64,000 nucleotides of DNA, from the sequence record MT710307.1; one strand, given 5' to 3'. The notes under the pieces are model-generated. The model searched no databases. It was not told the DNA's origin and saw only the letters and a list, made by a program, of their open reading frames with translations. A program made the translations under genes and the position numbers. Below, in pieces: positions 40,495 to 48,157 of the stretch; the stretch's first letter is position 1, and each line of letters opens with the position of its first letter.

Positions 40495-40539
40495 GAAGAT
40501 TGTTTTCTCCCCCACATTTTAATCTATAAGGAGTATCTC

Positions 40540-41124
40540 ATGTACAATTACGTTGTGTTGGGCCGCAAAGGTAGCATCGTCAGATTCGTCTTTAAATCTG
40601 ACCCGCCCGCCAAGCCGCGCGCGTTGGATTTAGCGGGCTTCGATTATAAAGGCATCCGCAAAGGCGTACAGCTGCACTTCGACGGTGATGTGAAACCGGA
40701 GAACCTTTTGTATTCTGGCGATGTGAAACCGAGAAAGCTTGTGGCTATCGGTAAGAAGAAACCCGCGAAGACTGCAAAAGAAAGCAAAAAGGCACCGAAG
40801 GTTGACCCGATCTTCGTCGTTATTAAACGCGTGAAACAGGTCATCGAATATAAGATCTGCGGGGACGAGTCTGCGGAGCTGTTGAACGAGACTCTGAAGA
40901 TTAGCCTCGCTGGTTACGACTACAGAAAGCTGCGTAAGGACATGACCTTCCAGTTTGAAGGTGGTAAGGTTGCAGCGGAGAACATCCGCTACTGGCCGTT
41001 CCGCGGCACTTCAAATAAGCTGCCGTTGCCGAAGCTTGAAGAAGTTGCACCTAAAGCGAAATCCGCTGCGGTGTCTAAGCGCGGTGCCACACCCAACGTG
41101 TCTATCCTGCGTAAGCACTTCTGA
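40540..41124 (+). CDS. Basic early protein with internally duplicated domain (194 aa)
   Basis: LAGFDYKGIRKGVQLHFDG..KPENLLY versus LAGYDYRKLRKDMTFQFEG..AAENIRY. Confidence 0.75.
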   Translation: MYNYVVLGRKGSIVRFVFKSDPPAKPRALDLAGFDYKGIRKGVQLHFDGDVKPENLLYSGDVKPRKLVAIGKKKPAKTAKESKKAPKVDPIFVVIKRVKQVIEYKICGDESAELLNETLKISLAGYDYRKLRKDMTFQFEGGKVAAENIRYWPFRGTSNKLPLPKLEEVAPKAKSAAVSKRGATPNVSILRKHF

Positions 41125-41131
41125 TCAGTAC

Positions 41132-41168
41132 GTCCTACTCCTTCGGGAGTAGGACTGTTTTATTTTTT
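41132..41168 (+). terminator. Intrinsic terminator (UUCG)
   Basis: GTCCTACTCC-TTCG-GGAGTAGGAC plus T-tract. Confidence 0.9.
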
Positions 41169-41179
41169 AAGGACTGTCG

Positions 41180-41707
41180 ATGACTACTTTTATTGCGGGC
41201 AAGAACTACCTCGCCGCAGACCGTGCGGTAATGAAAAACCGAATGGTATTTGAAGATGCGAAGATTCGCACTATCAAAGGGCGCATCGCGTACTTCTTTG
41301 GTTCAGAGCATCCCACGCCAGACGAACGCAAGTTGCTGGAAAAGCATATCTACGATTACATCTTCGGTAAGCAGAAAGCCCAAGAGGCAGCAGAGCTGTG
41401 GTTGCTGCACTTCATGGAAAGCAATACGCTGGTTGTGATGACCCGCAAGAAGACGCTGACCTTCAGTGCTATCTCACGGCTTGCTGCGTGGTCGCCGGAG
41501 CTGGGTGCCCCAACCCGCCATACAGGACTTACTGTAACCGAAGACCTGCTTGAAACACCTGTCGTTTATGGCTCGGGTGCAGAGTTGGCACGGGCAGGAT
41601 GGGCATGCGGATTACCGCCTGAGAACATCATTCTCATGGTACAGAAAATAGACCCGATGTCAGGGCATGGCTGCGATGTGGTTTACAGAGAGGACTTGCG
41701 AAAATGA
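41180..41707 (+). CDS. HslV/proteasome-beta-like Ntn threonine peptidase
   Basis: M-TT start, LAAD, AKI (catalytic Lys equivalent), YGSG, and D-P-M-SG near C-end, the canonical order in Thr proteases. Confidence 0.7.
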   Translation: MTTFIAGKNYLAADRAVMKNRMVFEDAKIRTIKGRIAYFFGSEHPTPDERKLLEKHIYDYIFGKQKAQEAAELWLLHFMESNTLVVMTRKKTLTFSAISRLAAWSPELGAPTRHTGLTVTEDLLETPVVYGSGAELARAGWACGLPPENIILMVQKIDPMSGHGCDVVYREDLRK

Positions 41708-42252
41708 GTACCGTTTCTATTGCTGGTTTCGTTGTGAATGGTGTGGTCTACGTCAACACCGCTGTTCAATCCATGCACCTGATGGCACCGTACAACCCCG
41801 AGGCGGGGTTCGATAAACTCGGGTGGTGGTTCCCGAACGACGGACAAGAAAAAATCAGTGACATCTTGGTTAATGGGGACGATTGCGAACGCCATGAGGA
41901 CATTACCTACTCCGGTAGTGTGCTGCGTCACGATGGTCGATTCTACGATGTTAAATTGGCCGGGCCAAACTATCGATTAACTTTCCTCCATCAACCAACC
42001 TCCGTGATGGTCTTTCCAGCCGATACGGAATCGGCGTTTGTGGCGACCTTTATCGAGCACCTGTCCATGCACCCCGATTTGGACACCGAAGGGCCTGAGT
42101 GGAGTGCAGAGCGTATCACGAAGATATTGTCGTGCTTCGGAGGCTGCCACAACTTCATCCCTTTCATGACTCTGGATGAACTCAAAGCCAAAGTCCAAGC
42201 GATGCCAGAGTGTAAATTAGCGCCCTTCCCCCGCCAAAGAAAGCCGGAATAA
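41704..42252 (+). CDS. Hypothetical protein, possible degenerate Ntn-fold partner (182 aa)
   Basis: ATGA-coupled to peptidase, similar size, MSTVSIAGFVVNGVVYVNT resembles the S1-S2 strands; GSG and D..SG absent. Confidence 0.35.
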   Translation: MSTVSIAGFVVNGVVYVNTAVQSMHLMAPYNPEAGFDKLGWWFPNDGQEKISDILVNGDDCERHEDITYSGSVLRHDGRFYDVKLAGPNYRLTFLHQPTSVMVFPADTESAFVATFIEHLSMHPDLDTEGPEWSAERITKILSCFGGCHNFIPFMTLDELKAKVQAMPECKLAPFPRQRKPE

Positions 42253-42313
42253 GAACGCGCAGATTTATAACAACATCACCCCTTTTAATGACAAACACAA
42301 GAGGATTATCATC

Positions 42314-42925
42314 ATGCAATCTGTAGCTCATGCGTTATCCCCAGTTACGTTTCCAAAGTTCACCGGTCTGCAAGTCTACATGTTGCAAGCCACCGCAGGG
42401 ACGCTCGCCGATGTAGCGCCTGAAGGTTATCGTGACCTCGTTAGCAACATGCTGAAAGATGGTAACATTCCTGCGGACACACAGGTCTGGCTGACGGTTG
42501 ATGAGTCGAACGTCAAAGCCGGTAAGAAGCAACGTCGTGGCGGTGCACACATCGATGGCAACTACGACCTCTTTGCGGGTGACTGGTGCACCGGTAGTTC
42601 TGGCTGGTTAAACGGGGTGCCGGGACGTGAACTGACGCTTGAAGAACACCATCGCAGTTATCAGGAGTTCGGTGGTGGGATGCTGATTGCCTCCAACCAT
42701 GCAGCCTGTCAGGTGTGGGAAGGGGAAGTGAACGGTATTCCTGGTCAAGGTGGCGACTGTGAGCATCTTCGTGACCAACTGGAAACGCTCCCGACCTATC
42801 TGATGGAAAGTAACCGAACGTACCTGACGAACTCACAGTGTGTGCACGAGTCGTTACCATTAAAAGTTGACTTTCCACGTCAGCTTGTGCGCATCACCCT
42901 GTCCGAGCAGTACAAATTTAACTAA
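42314..42925 (+). CDS. 2OG-Fe(II) dioxygenase-like protein
   Basis: RRGGAHIDG (HxD), CVHESLP (distal His), RQLVRIT (2OG-binding Arg). Confidence 0.7.
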   Translation: MQSVAHALSPVTFPKFTGLQVYMLQATAGTLADVAPEGYRDLVSNMLKDGNIPADTQVWLTVDESNVKAGKKQRRGGAHIDGNYDLFAGDWCTGSSGWLNGVPGRELTLEEHHRSYQEFGGGMLIASNHAACQVWEGEVNGIPGQGGDCEHLRDQLETLPTYLMESNRTYLTNSQCVHESLPLKVDFPRQLVRITLSEQYKFN

Positions 42926-42951
42926 TCTAAAACCACAAAGAGAATCAGAAC

Positions 42952-43614
42952 ATGGCGAAGCAAAAGAAAGTACGGAACAAAAAATATAACCCGCAGCAAG
43001 CCCACGCAGAAACAGCCCGTATGGTGGTACAAAACTCATTAGCACGTATCTCCTTTATTGGTGCGTCTAACCGTCGTATTCAACCGTACGGCGGCCGCGG
43101 CTTCCAATTCACCGTCAGTCGTCCGGTACGGGTAACGGTCAGTGCAGCATTGGCTGAAACACTGTTCGAAGACCCACGGACATGGTCGGTGTGGATGGCG
43201 CATTATGCTGTTAATGCGGAAGGTGCCGTGGATGTGGAGTCTGGCGTTCTTCGCTTAGACGAATATACCTTGACTGACTTCACGGAAAACGTAGACAAGT
43301 TAGTGGAGCACATGAAACCTGAACACATGATGGATAACCCGGACTACGTGGGCTATGCATTCTTTGCTTCACCGAATGAGCGTTACGATTTCACGCACGA
43401 CACCACGGACGAACGTTTGATTGAAAACTTCATGGCGTCGGGTGTGTTAGAGAAAGAGAACCATCTTCCGCAACACGTTCTGAATGTTACCAAAGAAGAA
43501 CTTATTATCATGCTCATGGCAGACCACGCCAAGTTTGATACCAACATCAGTATTCACCAGCGCGGCGAAGGTGATGATTACCAAGTCGCAAATAAGCAAG
43601 TTATCGGAGAGTAA
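42952..43614 (+). CDS. Hypothetical protein with basic KKVRNKKYNP N-terminus (220 aa)
   Basis: ORF in operon upstream of HslU. Confidence 0.7.
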   Translation: MAKQKKVRNKKYNPQQAHAETARMVVQNSLARISFIGASNRRIQPYGGRGFQFTVSRPVRVTVSAALAETLFEDPRTWSVWMAHYAVNAEGAVDVESGVLRLDEYTLTDFTENVDKLVEHMKPEHMMDNPDYVGYAFFASPNERYDFTHDTTDERLIENFMASGVLEKENHLPQHVLNVTKEELIIMLMADHAKFDTNISIHQRGEGDDYQVANKQVIGE

Positions 43615-43617
43615 GAA

Positions 43618-44184
43618 ATGAAGTTCTGGGAGCGCTTTTGTCGCTTGTTTAAAGATGTCCCTGAGGCCCAGTCCGACGGTGACCGTTATACCCAAATCGT
43701 GCGTGACTACTTCAATGCAGGTAATCACAACGTCGTGGAACTCTGTGATGCCATTGGCATGACACCGCGCTCACTGTACTTTGCGGTTAACGACGACAAC
43801 GTCCGGGCGAACATTCTGCCCCGCCTCCCTGAAAAGATGCGGATGGAATTGCGTGATGAGCTGACCGCGCGTGCGTTCAGTCGTCAGGCCGTCTCGTTAA
43901 TTCGTCCGAGCACCGCGAAGTACGATTTTGACAACCTCAATGAGTTACTGGCACACGTACACGAATTGTTCGAAACCTACCGCATCGAACGTGGCGAGAA
44001 AGTGGACCCCTCTATCAAGGCGTACATCCACTCTCTTACACCGCGTACGGTGCGTATTGCCTTCGTAGGCAGTGGTCACGAATTCAATGTGGGTATCATT
44101 GAAGGTATTAACGTTGTGCAGCAAAACCTGCTTATGGTGAATTATGGAAAACTTAACGCCCGTGGAAATCGTCAATGTTTTTAA
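43618..44184 (+). CDS. Hypothetical protein (188 aa)
   Basis: GGAG RBS; 41-nt overlap with HslU. Confidence 0.7.
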   Translation: MKFWERFCRLFKDVPEAQSDGDRYTQIVRDYFNAGNHNVVELCDAIGMTPRSLYFAVNDDNVRANILPRLPEKMRMELRDELTARAFSRQAVSLIRPSTAKYDFDNLNELLAHVHELFETYRIERGEKVDPSIKAYIHSLTPRTVRIAFVGSGHEFNVGIIEGINVVQQNLLMVNYGKLNARGNRQCF

Positions 44185-45877
44185 CCGTTATGTCCACGGT
44201 CAAGAACTGGCGAAAAAGATGTTGGCGATTGCTCTGCGTAACCGCGTACGGGTAGCATTGCTACCCCTCGGTGAACGTAACAGCGTTCGTAAACAGAATC
44301 TGTTGTTACTGGGGCCAACTGGCTGCGGTAAAACGGCGCTGATGCGCGTACTGAAAACGCAGTTTGGGTTACCTGTCTTAGAGCAGGACATGACGGGCTT
44401 CTCCGAGACGGGCTACGTGGGGCGTAATCTCAATACCGTGGGGACGGACTTACAAACCCTCACGCGTACAATCGCTTTGCCGGACTGGTACGTAGAAATG
44501 CGCACCGGAATGCAACTCGAAAAAGACGAGCAGCGCTATACCCGCGAAGAACTCAAAGCGTTAGAAGAGAAAGAGTACGAAGTGGAAAGTGCTGCACGCC
44601 AAGCGGAATGGGAAGCAGGACGTGATGCTAAAAAGCAACACGAACAAACCCTGAAAGACTTGGGCGTGTTCCCGGACGATGATACGTACAACCATTATCG
44701 CATGGTCTATTACATGCGTGCGTTTTTGGTGGGGTATCATGCACTAAAGAACCTGCCGTACGATGTCATTGATTTCGCGGATATCGAAATGATTCATGGG
44801 CAGAAGCTCATTGATGTCGCGAAGACTGTGGTTGGCCTTGTCGAGAAAATGGCGGGTAGACCGATCAACAGTATCGATGACCTCAATGAGGATCTCAGCG
44901 ACCGCACCGATGAGATGATGGAGAACAACCCCGCGTTGTTAGGCGAGTTCATGGGACTGATGGCCTACAACGAAGTGCTGGAAGCCATTATGGAACTTGG
45001 CACCGATCGCCTCAGCAGTAACCCAGTGGCGGCCTGTGTCTCCTCTGGTGACTGGTACGACGTCGCGCACTCTTTCGATGAAGCTGATGAACGTGACATC
45101 CCGCCCGGCATTGCTTGGCGTCCGATGGACTTCACGGAGTTTGCGCTCTACATCTGTGTGATGTTGGTGCGTGACCCGGAAGGTCTGGAGGAAGTCTTCG
45201 AAGACTGTGATGACTTCACCCGCTTTGCCGACAAGAAACTTTGGAGCTACACCGTCCCTAAACCGGAAGTGGTGCAGCCTAAAGGGAAGCGCAATGTGTT
45301 GTCGAAGAAAGACCTCGACAAGGTGGCGAACTGTAACGGTCGCGACTTCGTGGAGAATTTCGGTGTGGTGTTCTTAGATGAGATTGACAAACTCATTGAA
45401 ACGGATACCACGGGACGGACACATGTCTCCCGCAGTGGTGTGCAGCGCAGTCTGCTCAAGATGGTAGAAGGTGGCCTCTATGCTGGGATTGACACCACGA
45501 ACATTTTGTTTATTGGTGCTGGTTCGTTCGCAGAAGCCCCAGTGACCAAACTGATGCCAGAGTTGCAAGGTCGGTTTACGTTGCGTGCGGAAATGGAACC
45601 ACTTGACAAAGAAGCGATGATCGCAATTTGTCGAATGGACAGCAGCGAGTTCCATGCGATGGTGCGTCTCTTGCGAATCGAAGGGGTGAAAGTCAATTAC
45701 GACCTTGACACCTTTGAGTACATTGCAGAGAAAACCGTTGAAGCAAACTCGGTCGATGACCTCGGTGCACGCCGTTTAGCCGCGATTGTCGAAGCGTTGT
45801 TCCAAGATGCGTTGTACGAACCCAACAAATACACCGACAAAGGTTATGACCTGACTGGTCAGAACCTAAGGAAGTAA
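44144..45877 (+). CDS. hslU: HslU (ClpY)-like AAA+ ATPase
   Basis: TPVEIV..GQELAKKMLAIALRNR, GPTGCGKT, GYVG pore loop, VFLDEIDK, GVQRSLL..VEG, PELQGRF, GARRL. Confidence 0.92.
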   Translation: MENLTPVEIVNVFNRYVHGQELAKKMLAIALRNRVRVALLPLGERNSVRKQNLLLLGPTGCGKTALMRVLKTQFGLPVLEQDMTGFSETGYVGRNLNTVGTDLQTLTRTIALPDWYVEMRTGMQLEKDEQRYTREELKALEEKEYEVESAARQAEWEAGRDAKKQHEQTLKDLGVFPDDDTYNHYRMVYYMRAFLVGYHALKNLPYDVIDFADIEMIHGQKLIDVAKTVVGLVEKMAGRPINSIDDLNEDLSDRTDEMMENNPALLGEFMGLMAYNEVLEAIMELGTDRLSSNPVAACVSSGDWYDVAHSFDEADERDIPPGIAWRPMDFTEFALYICVMLVRDPEGLEEVFEDCDDFTRFADKKLWSYTVPKPEVVQPKGKRNVLSKKDLDKVANCNGRDFVENFGVVFLDEIDKLIETDTTGRTHVSRSGVQRSLLKMVEGGLYAGIDTTNILFIGAGSFAEAPVTKLMPELQGRFTLRAEMEPLDKEAMIAICRMDSSEFHAMVRLLRIEGVKVNYDLDTFEYIAEKTVEANSVDDLGARRLAAIVEALFQDALYEPNKYTDKGYDLTGQNLRK

Positions 45878-45879
45878 TA

Positions 45880-46077
45880 ATGCTTGCGATCATCGTAGCA
45901 ATTATCATTGGCTTTTTGATGCTCAGTGTATTGGGTATCTGGATTGCCAAAGTTTCTATACGGTATCACTGGCCGTGGTGGGTTATGTTAGTAGTGGCGC
46001 TGGCACTCGGCGGTCTTCTCGGCAACGTTTACTTTAACTTCGTTATTGTACCACTTTATCAAAATATCGGAAATTGA
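45880..46077 (+). CDS. Small 2-TM membrane protein (65 aa)
   Basis: Two hydrophobic stretches. Confidence 0.7.
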   Translation: MLAIIVAIIIGFLMLSVLGIWIAKVSIRYHWPWWVMLVVALALGGLLGNVYFNFVIVPLYQNIGN

Positions 46078-46081
46078 GAAC

Positions 46082-46555
46082 ATGGAAAAGAAAACTGAAC
46101 GTAACTTGATTGAAATCACAGGCAAGGGCGAAGACAACAACGGCAAGTTCTACTCGGTCGTGTTGTTAGACCAAACCAGAATGAATGCAAACGGTAACCA
46201 ATATAACGGTGATATTGCACATCTGGTGCGGGGTATCAAACGTATGCCGCGACTGTTCTGTGAAATTGACCCGTACCACGATTACCGTTTTCAGTACCCG
46301 GTAAGCGATGACCGTTCTGTGTCCGGACCATGCACCATTGATAACCGCAACGTTTGCGCATCTATCGAAAACATCCGTCACGATAAGATGAACAAGCGTG
46401 TATCCGCCGAGTTGCGTCCGTGGGGACCACATGCCTCTATGGTGCGTGATTTGATGGATGGGGTAAACCAGAACGTGACCTTCGGGATGCGTGCACTGGC
46501 AACCCCTGATGGCAAGATTGATAAAGTCATCACATGGGATTTATTACCAGAATGA
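46082..46555 (+). CDS. Prohead-protease-like protein (phiKZ gp175/T4 gp21 fold), probably inactive
   Basis: NANGNQY, FCEIDP (vs GExGHP), RPWGPH...NVTFGMRA (vs NVxFSxR), ITWD. Confidence 0.6.
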   Translation: MEKKTERNLIEITGKGEDNNGKFYSVVLLDQTRMNANGNQYNGDIAHLVRGIKRMPRLFCEIDPYHDYRFQYPVSDDRSVSGPCTIDNRNVCASIENIRHDKMNKRVSAELRPWGPHASMVRDLMDGVNQNVTFGMRALATPDGKIDKVITWDLLPE

Positions 46556-46752
46556 ATATCGCCGAACTGTTCTACTGGGTTACCATGGTGTTAAGCGGGT
46601 ATTTCCTTATCGTGATTGCCATTGACATGGTTAAGGATTTACTCAAGGGCGACCTGATGGGTGTGCTCGTTTTGATCGTGTTTGCTATCATCATCTGGAA
46701 CGTCCACCGTTGGGCGTTCGTAAGACTGGTGCCGTTGCAGACATTGTTCTAA
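46552..46752 (+). CDS. Small 2-TM membrane protein (66 aa)
   Basis: ATGA coupling; two hydrophobic helices. Confidence 0.7.
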   Translation: MNIAELFYWVTMVLSGYFLIVIAIDMVKDLLKGDLMGVLVLIVFAIIIWNVHRWAFVRLVPLQTLF

Positions 46753-47092: not shown

Positions 47093-48157
47093 ATGCCACG
47101 TCTCTTAGCGTTCACCGGTGGAGTTGATTCCACATGGGTGTTACAGAAGTTAATTCAACAACCGTCTGCGGATGGCGGTGAAGTAATCCATCCGGTCTAC
47201 ATGGATTTCTATCAAGGTTCTCCGGCAGCCATTGTCGAGTTCCTGCTGGGCAGCGAAATTGCTCTGCGGCTGTTAAAGCACAACAAAGACAATTATAAAG
47301 AGCCGCTGGAGTGGCGCTCACCTCCGCTGCAAATCTTCACGAGCTGTATCATCGGTCGTTCAAGCGGAAATGAAAGTCGCCTGATTCAACAGGGTAACAC
47401 TGTGTTGGGTTTGGCACACCTGATGAATGCGGTGCAAGCACGCCATCCGGGGTCTACCGCCTTAACCGGTTGGAACAAAGCCGACTTCATTGAAAGCAGT
47501 GCGCTGCAAGGTGAGTGGTCGGAAGAAGACTACTTGCGCCTGAAGAAACTCTACAGTGAAATGATGTTCTTCCAAGACCATCACTATCGCTGTTCTCCGC
47601 TTCTCACCCCGGCGTGGGATATGGAGAAGAAAGACATGTGGGATGCACTCCCGGCTGATGTGCAAGAACTGATCACTGTGTGTTCAACCTACATGTTTAA
47701 GATTTACCATGTTAAGTCCGAGAACGCGCTGTACATCTCCTGTAACCCAGAACACTTCGGTAAGTCTGTGCGGTATCTGGCCCGTGGGATTAACCTCACG
47801 GCAGCGTGGCGTATCGCGATTGATGACGAGTTCCATCGTCGACTCAACACGGACAATGTCCCGAGTAACCACTTCGCTGGAAGCTTCCCCAGTGAGCTGC
47901 TGTCCTCATCAGAAACAAGACACCGACCATCGTTGCGTATGCGTTCCGATGACCGTAACCTGCAAATCGAAGCCTACAGTATCGATGAGTGGAAAACGAA
48001 GTTTGACCATGTAGAAGATATGCTAAAGGTGGAACGTGAGCGAGAACAAGCCGAGTACCGCGCCCAGCGAGAAAAAGAGAAAGCTGAAAATCCGGACAGT
48101 CCAAATCGCGAAGTGGCGGAAGGCGAAGTCGCTGCATCCAGCAGTGTCGCTGATTGA
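47093..48157 (+). CDS. PP-loop ATP pyrophosphatase, QueC-like (divergent)
   Basis: N-terminal LLAFTGGVDSTW PP-loop, PVYMDFYQ, TGWNKAD, LLTPAWDMEKKDMW; canonical QueC Zn cysteines only partly present. Confidence 0.65.
   Translation: MPRLLAFTGGVDSTWVLQKLIQQPSADGGEVIHPVYMDFYQGSPAAIVEFLLGSEIALRLLKHNKDNYKEPLEWRSPPLQIFTSCIIGRSSGNESRLIQQGNTVLGLAHLMNAVQARHPGSTALTGWNKADFIESSALQGEWSEEDYLRLKKLYSEMMFFQDHHYRCSPLLTPAWDMEKKDMWDALPADVQELITVCSTYMFKIYHVKSENALYISCNPEHFGKSVRYLARGINLTAAWRIAIDDEFHRRLNTDNVPSNHFAGSFPSELLSSSETRHRPSLRMRSDDRNLQIEAYSIDEWKTKFDHVEDMLKVEREREQAEYRAQREKEKAENPDSPNREVAEGEVAASSSVAD

Follow-up and report, generated by a model that had tools for sequence, protein, structure and literature searches.

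A predicted HslV-branch threonine peptidase of the jumbo phage pSal-SNUABM-04, its constant gene partner gp117, and a tail-less HslU-like ATPase encoded downstream

HslV (ClpQ; MEROPS T1B) is the peptidase component of bacterial HslUV and forms a dodecamer of two stacked hexameric rings; in that system, hslV directly precedes hslU within a single operon. The C-terminal tail of HslU reportedly inserts between HslV subunits and activates HslV (Sousa et al. 2000; Ramachandran et al. 2002). Homologues of the proteasome have also been described in phages, where Fuchs, Alva & Lupas (2021) distinguished the forms PPH, AAH, and CPH (PMC8665760). In that account, PPH is about 140 aa long and lacks helix H2; Anbu measures about 230 to 240 aa and has a long C-terminal coiled-coil helix; connectase has neither H1 nor H2 and carries an S3/S4 helical insertion; and BPH has a long acidic pore loop (PMC8665760). 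In the searchable literature, we found no experimental or biochemical characterization of any phage HslV-like protein.

The locus analyzed here belongs to the Salmonella jumbo phage pSal-SNUABM-04 (MT710307.1, 239.6 kb; genus Machinavirus, family Chimalliviridae). Unless stated otherwise, coordinates refer to the window, the whole 64,000-nucleotide stretch of this record that was analyzed, in which a position equals the record position minus 62000. Positions 40500 to 46600 are 100% identical to MT710307.1 and 85 to 94% identical to the Erwinia phages Parshik, Huxley, and Machina and the pEa_SNUABM series. The HslV-like identity of ORF116 was already public before this analysis: a GenBank note on its coding sequence reads “protease_HslV (cd01913); proteasome (PF00227)”, the pSal-SNUABM-04 genome paper calls ORF116 HslV-like and states that the phage has no HslU, the orthologues in pEa_SNUABM_43 are annotated as HslV-like and HslU-like, and RefSeq calls the Derbicusvirus relatives “peptidase HslV family”. 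Added here are a constant partner gene, gp117; a tail-less, insertion-bearing HslU-family ATPase annotated as “DnaA”; and a contig in which the gene pair occurs with no HslU-like gene in 56 kb.

ORF116 (gp116; QOC54576.1) occupies positions 41180 to 41707 on the plus strand and encodes a predicted HslV-family N-terminal-threonine peptidase of 175 aa without a propeptide. The ATG at 41180 is the earliest possible start and lies just three codons past the upstream stop; a Shine-Dalgarno-like AAGGA (41169 to 41173, plus strand) lies 7 nt 5′ of it. Between gp115 and gp116 is a terminator-like hairpin on the plus strand (41132 to 41155) with a 10-bp stem, a TTCG loop, and a T-run. Because this strong hairpin ends the upstream gene gp115, gp116 appears to be the first gene of a new same-strand block.

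The first-pass annotation of this DNA had recognized five motifs in the order in which they occur in proteasome beta subunits, and we find each of them at its place: in Met1 numbering, MTT at residues 1 to 3, LAAD at 11 to 14, AKI at 27 to 29, YGSG at 130 to 133, and DPMSG at 158 to 162. The candidate catalytic residues in this numbering are Thr2, Asp14, Lys28, Gly41, Ser132, Asp158, and Ser161, Gly41 being the equivalent of Gly47 in an alignment column that is not clean; in mature numbering, with Met removed, the series reads Thr1, Asp13, Lys27, Ser131, and Asp157/Ser160. The D..SG element had been judged more proteasome-like than HslV-like, and its D-x-x-S-G spacing indeed equals that of Asp166/Ser169/Gly170 in proteasome beta, whereas E. 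coli HslV has “GDICIYTN” there. Thr1, whose conservation had been left for checking, proved invariant among the gp116 homologues (n = 25). In an alignment of these proteins, which range from 22 to 98% identity, the invariant positions are T2, T3, D14, G131, G133, D158, and D166. A register-free check found in all 25 a Thr-Thr start, an Asp as mature residue 13, a Lys with a hydrophobic residue after it at 27 to 32, a G-S/T-G, and a D-x-x-S/T-S/T/G; the start is M-T-T in 24, and one is called as M-K-L-T-T. As judged from the aligned sequences, the motif pattern of gp116 is not a product of chance, given its retention in 25 homologues.

In the profile search that the first-pass annotation had suggested, direct comparisons were weak. 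gp116 has no match to Pfam PF00227 at E<=1, none to NCBIfam, including its HslV models, and, as a single sequence, none in the PDB; when 18 more remote homologues were scanned, only 1 reached PF00227. Among the PHROGs, gp116 matches the “peptidase HslV family” at 7.5e-10; 23 of the 25 members of the gp116 family match it, with a best E value of 9.9e-35. Searched against the PDB, a 25-sequence profile finds HslV and proteasome chains: its best match, nearly full length, is HslV from T. brucei (4hnz, 2.6e-7), and 23 of the 24 matches listed, including all below E 0.9, are HslV or proteasome alpha or beta chains. When the family was aligned with E. coli HslV by hhalign, its Thr1, Asp, and Lys fell on Thr1, Asp17, and Lys33; the family has two deletions there, one of 4 residues and one of 2. 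The family is rare. A word-indexed search recovered 6 proteins and an exhaustive profile search of 1.84 billion representatives recovered 23; a word-indexed search with the A2 alignment added one further protein only, IMG/VR yielded one locus (98% identity) and no others, and tblastn with P0017, aimed at a larger gp116 family, returned no phage record.

Structure prediction, also among the suggested checks, gave a proteasome/HslV Ntn fold of the alpha-beta-beta-alpha type, with elements in the order strand/H1-H2/strand/H3-H4. The AlphaFold2 model of gp116 built on the 25-sequence alignment (pLDDT 89.5, pTM 0.83) contains six N-terminal strands, H1 (residues 47 to 62), H2 (65 to 79), a second sheet, helices at 134 to 142 and 147 to 157 (H3-H4), and a last strand, as well as an extra low-confidence hairpin at approximately residues 99 to 115. 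The loop after H2 is very short (residues 80 to 82), and a short loop has been linked to regulation by an unfoldase gatekeeper (Fuchs et al., PMC8665760). In a Foldseek comparison with the PDB, the best 50 matches were all HslV or 20S beta (probability 1.0, E 2.5e-7 to 1e-5, TM 0.5 to 0.6); the TM to HslV is only 0.55 to 0.60, with approximately 14 to 22% identity in the structural alignments. Against a viral library, the model retrieved many jumbo-phage proteins, a few of them named “proteasome subunit beta”, “ATP-dependent protease subunit”, or “Ntn hydrolase”.

The model and the profile searches bear on two readings in which gp116 would not be a protease of this kind. In the first, the motifs would be accidental and the protein would have another fold, for example one resembling YbgJ/PxpB. 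A 7-sequence A1 profile had matched YbgJ (5dud_B) over residues 81 to 158 at E 0.0045, and the first, shallow model of gp116, from seven sequences, was poor (pLDDT 64), with PDB matches to HslV and proteasome beta at a TM of 0.3. The YbgJ match is absent with the 25-sequence profile, and the confident model fits only HslV and proteasome beta; this reading is refuted by the deeper profile, the model, and Foldseek, and we give it practically no credence. [quoted passage not shown] The gp116 model contains H1 and H2 and has no S3/S4 insertion, unlike connectase, and the full catalytic set is invariant, contrary to what a silent subunit would suggest; we regard this alternative as highly improbable. 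With profiles, fold searches, and residue conservation in agreement on the proteasome-beta/HslV-like identity first proposed, we assign gp116 with high confidence, from its alignment and model, to the HslV branch of Ntn threonine peptidases as a catalytically equipped member.

The tightest genomic link of gp116 is to gp117 (41704 to 42252, plus strand), a conserved partner of 182 aa whose start codon shares bases with the gp116 stop (ATGA). When all fetched loci were scanned with HMMs, a gp117-type ORF lay directly 3′ of the gp116-type gene in 10 of 10 cases, namely, the window, pEa_43, CR5, Phobos, and six metagenomic contigs, with gp116-type identity as low as about 25%. These loci span at least five divergent lineages, and the 4-nt overlap is kept in most. 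Because the two genes, as a translationally coupled pair, form a conserved unit, gp117 is probably an obligatory partner of gp116, acting as an assembly factor, regulator, gate, or adaptor. We considered gp117 as a second, alpha-type proteasome-like subunit, and hhalign ruled this out, finding no homology to the HslV family (probability 0.1 to 0.2%). Searches of gp117 against Pfam, PHROG-annotated families, PADLOC, and the PDB gave no significant match. The sole lead is a nonsignificant resemblance of profile positions 62 to 100 to the RAD23 ubiquitin-like domain (E 0.13); if it were real, gp117 could serve a viral proteasome-like protease as its ubiquitin-like adaptor or tag.

Three ORFs, gp118, gp119, and gp120 (42314 to 44184, plus strand), lie between the protease pair and the ATPase. 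In Caitlin, which has no gp116 or gp117, ORFs resembling gp118 to gp120 precede the HslU-like gene, a resemblance judged by length and order alone. The first-pass annotation had placed an hslU-type gene 2.4 kb downstream of gp116, and an HslU-like ORF does start at 44144, 2436 nt past the gp116 stop. It is on the same strand as gp116, with four ORFs in the interval, and in this interval we found no strong terminator and none comparable to the hairpin at 41132 to 41155.

This ORF, ORF121 (gp121; 44144 to 45877, plus strand), encodes a 577-aa protein that GenBank names “putative DnaA protein” and that we identify as an HslU-family AAA+ ATPase and a predicted unfoldase. It matches the hslU model TIGR00390 at 1e-58 (199 bits, under the 362-bit cutoff) and HslU chains in the PDB at up to 6e-48, in two blocks comprising residues 1 to 106 and 393 to 577. 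It also aligns with E. coli HslU at GPTGCGKT (Walker A), the GYVG pore loop, DEIDK (Walker B), and GARRL (sensor-2). The TIGR00390 match, the PDB chains, and the aligned motifs thus agree with the earlier naming of this neighbor as an HslU-family ATPase. By these similarities ORF121 is HslU-like, not DnaA, which makes the published claim of an HslV without an HslU in pSal-SNUABM-04 wrong. In place of the I domain, at the I-domain site, gp121 has a nonhomologous insertion of approximately 290 aa, for which neither Pfam nor the PDB gave a match. The C terminus is also unusual. gp121 ends in ...DLTGQNLRK, and the E. coli HslU alignment stops at ...DLSGQNI (residue 418), whereas E. coli HslU runs approximately 23 residues further, to ...EDLSRFIL. 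Since gp121 stops at about residue 420 of E. coli HslU, it has no docking tail; the HslU-like proteins of CR5 and Phobos run just 4 residues further than gp121 at this end, and the canonical tail is missing there also.

Several further observations concern this part of the genome. The C termini of gp116 (...EDLRK, 41693 to 41704) and gp121 (...QNLRK, 45863 to 45874) are alike, and the CR5 proteins end similarly. We set these shared ...LRK ends aside as a signal; the likeness is probably a coincidence, because the gp116 end matches ...EELSYKA of E. coli HslV. Downstream of gp121, the ORF at 46046 to 46555, annotated as a virion structural protein, matches Peptidase_S80 (phiKZ-type prohead protease) and the PHROG “head maturation protease”. 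Just ahead of this ORF, pEa_SNUABM_43 carries an additional gene of 729 nt, “prohead core protein protease”, that is absent from pSal-SNUABM-04. A few genes downstream, at 47093 to 48157 (record 109093 to 110157), GenBank notes a QueC/ExsB-domain protein followed by a DUF488 protein; these genes could relate to 7-deazaguanine modification of DNA or tRNA.

With the docking tail missing from gp121, textbook HslU-HslV activation is not simply transferable to gp116 and gp121, and a noncanonical link between gp116 and its tail-less HslU-like neighbor is plausible. The missing tail can also be taken as a sign that gp116 and gp117 form a self-contained, ATP-independent peptidase module, as has been proposed for BPH and other HslU-less proteasome homologues, with gp121 acting as an unrelated, stand-alone unfoldase or chaperone, for example, in the phage nucleus. 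The distribution of the genes can be cited on both sides. The 19 phage records that contain a gp116-type gene all appear among the HslU-like matches as well, and the HslU-like gene lies 2.2 to 2.5 kb downstream on the same strand in the five Machinavirus/Derbicusvirus loci that were read or scanned, which argues against a module independent of the ATPase. In favor of such a module, locus L007 has the gp116/gp117 pair with no HslU/ClpX-like ORF within 8 kb, and ENA contig k141_430250 (67 kb) has the pair with no HslU/ClpX-like ORF in positions 1 to 56022, although metagenomic contigs are incomplete genomes. The latter contig comes from a distant phage, and genes near the pair encode thymidylate synthase, an SNF2 helicase with an intein, a GroEL-like protein, and several radical-SAM proteins. 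The converse arrangement, an HslU-like gene without a gp116-type gene, is found in several genera (Caitlin, Wellington, SPAsTU, and RAY).

RAY deserves separate mention, as its gp116 was localized with phage DNA in the nucleus (PMC10299810). This protein is a more distant HslU-like ATPase (phmmer 7.9e-28 to gp121), and its neighbors include no HslV-like or gp117-like gene. A nuclear HslU-like protein without an HslV-like neighbor fits a stand-alone unfoldase; being HslU-like, RAY gp116 says little about gp116 of pSal-SNUABM-04. Also against the ATP-independent module is the very short post-H2 loop of gp116, which is like that of gated HslV and unlike BPH. Taken together, we consider it possible but rather unlikely that the pair works independently of an ATPase.

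The activating tail that gp121 lacks is present in the HslU of Salmonella and Erwinia, and host HslU might instead activate gp116. The resulting hybrid protease would differ in its cleavage or regulation, and gp121 would have some other task. A second HslV-like protein of this phage is relevant here. ORF1, outside the window at positions 1 to 474 of record MT710307.1, encodes 157 aa with an M-T-T start and is a paralogue of gp116 (hhalign probability 95%, C-terminal third); by eye, it seemingly has one helix after the first sheet and is more PPH-like than gp116. Genes of the ORF1 type are widely conserved in SPN3US-like jumbo phages and occur also in Klebsiella phages of approximately 48 kb, none of which are among the HslU-like matches, which means that not every phage HslV-like protein can depend on an ATPase encoded by the phage. 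This favors activation by the host. Against it, structural alignments give gp116 an identity to HslV of only about 14%, and the invariant coupling to gp117 would be left unexplained; we judge host activation of gp116 very unlikely. ORF1 could itself be the real partner of the phage ATPase, which would count against gp116 in that role.

We therefore favor, as the likely explanation of the whole locus, an HslV-branch peptidase, gp116, with gp117 as its partner and gp121 as a probable noncanonical feeder. Among the proteasome-like Ntn hydrolases, gp116 would be a divergent member of the HslV branch that is made without a propeptide. Once methionine aminopeptidase had cleaved off Met1, Thr1 would be free to act both as the nucleophile and as the general base, as it does in E. 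coli HslV, and the active site would be completed by Asp13 and Lys27 (Asp17 and Lys33 in the proteasome), the G-S-G serine (proteasome Ser129), and the D-x-x-S pair (proteasome Asp166/Ser169). As in HslV, gp116 subunits would most likely be arranged in stacked rings, with the active sites inside, where unfolded polypeptides would be degraded. gp121 probably feeds substrates to gp116 through a noncanonical contact, because it is without the HslV-activating C-terminal tail. The likely role would be to degrade selected proteins, of the host or of the phage itself, in an ATP-dependent way while this nucleus-forming phage infects the cell. The Chimalliviridae are nucleus-forming jumbo phages, in which DNA is walled off from the host and the placement of proteins is controlled; a viral proteasome-like protease with its own unfoldase would permit the removal of chosen host or phage proteins, such as defense factors or stage-specific regulators. 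A bolder version, which we hold to be unlikely, is an undescribed two-gene module in which an HslV-like threonine peptidase depends on gp117, gp117 possibly replaces the HslU tail as activator or gate, and the HslU-like ATPase docks through a new interface. What remains of interest in the locus is gp117, the absence of a docking tail, and the misannotated HslU.

How does this locus compare with the described systems? Among the relatives named by Fuchs et al., the phage-borne homologues share with gp116 a Group-I (HslV-like) character, compactness, carriage by tailed phages, and conserved active-site residues (PMC8665760). gp116 has 175 aa and both H1 and H2 and so does not fit the description of PPH. 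The gp116 model has none of the described Anbu, connectase, or BPH elements, and Anbu chains stood far down the list for the 7-sequence model and are absent from the best 50 for the 25-sequence model. With 20S beta subunits, gp116 shares the Ntn fold, the Thr1/Asp17/Lys33/Ser129/Asp166/Ser169 pattern, and the D-x-x-S-G spacing, and human, yeast, and archaeal beta chains are among its best fold matches. It differs from them in having no propeptide and no C-terminal H5/S12, the chain stopping after the last strand, and in having no alpha-type partner. The word “minimal” in the first-pass annotation is apt in relation to 20S beta subunits; it does not hold against E. coli HslV, which is of equal length (176 codons).

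The closest likeness in cellular systems is to HslV. gp116 and E. coli HslV match in length (175 aa and 176 codons) and in an M-T-T start without a propeptide, and HslV, like gp116, contains the G-S-G-G motif, has its helices paired as H1/H2 and H3/H4, and has a post-H2 loop that is very short. HslV also provides the best profile and fold matches, and an HslU-family gene follows downstream on the same strand. Compared with HslV, the first hairpin of gp116 is shorter by 4 residues and its Asp-Lys spacing by 2 (Asp13/Lys27 versus 17/33), the D-x-x-S-G spacing is of the proteasome type, there is an extra hairpin at approximately residues 99 to 115, and the protein falls under the Pfam and NCBIfam thresholds. 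Compared with HslUV as a system, four genes separate gp116 from the ATPase, and the ATPase is without the activating C-terminal tail. Among phages, the Derbicusvirus proteins CR5_121 and Phobos gp123 (“peptidase HslV family”) differ in that BLASTP to gp116 aligns the C-terminal third only (40% over 45 aa) and in that the ATPase insertion is larger still (687 aa). They nonetheless belong to the same subfamily as gp116 (A2 HMM, 1e-43), and their loci have the same gene order: a protease, a partner of approximately 182 aa, several small ORFs, and an HslU-domain protein ending in ...LRK.
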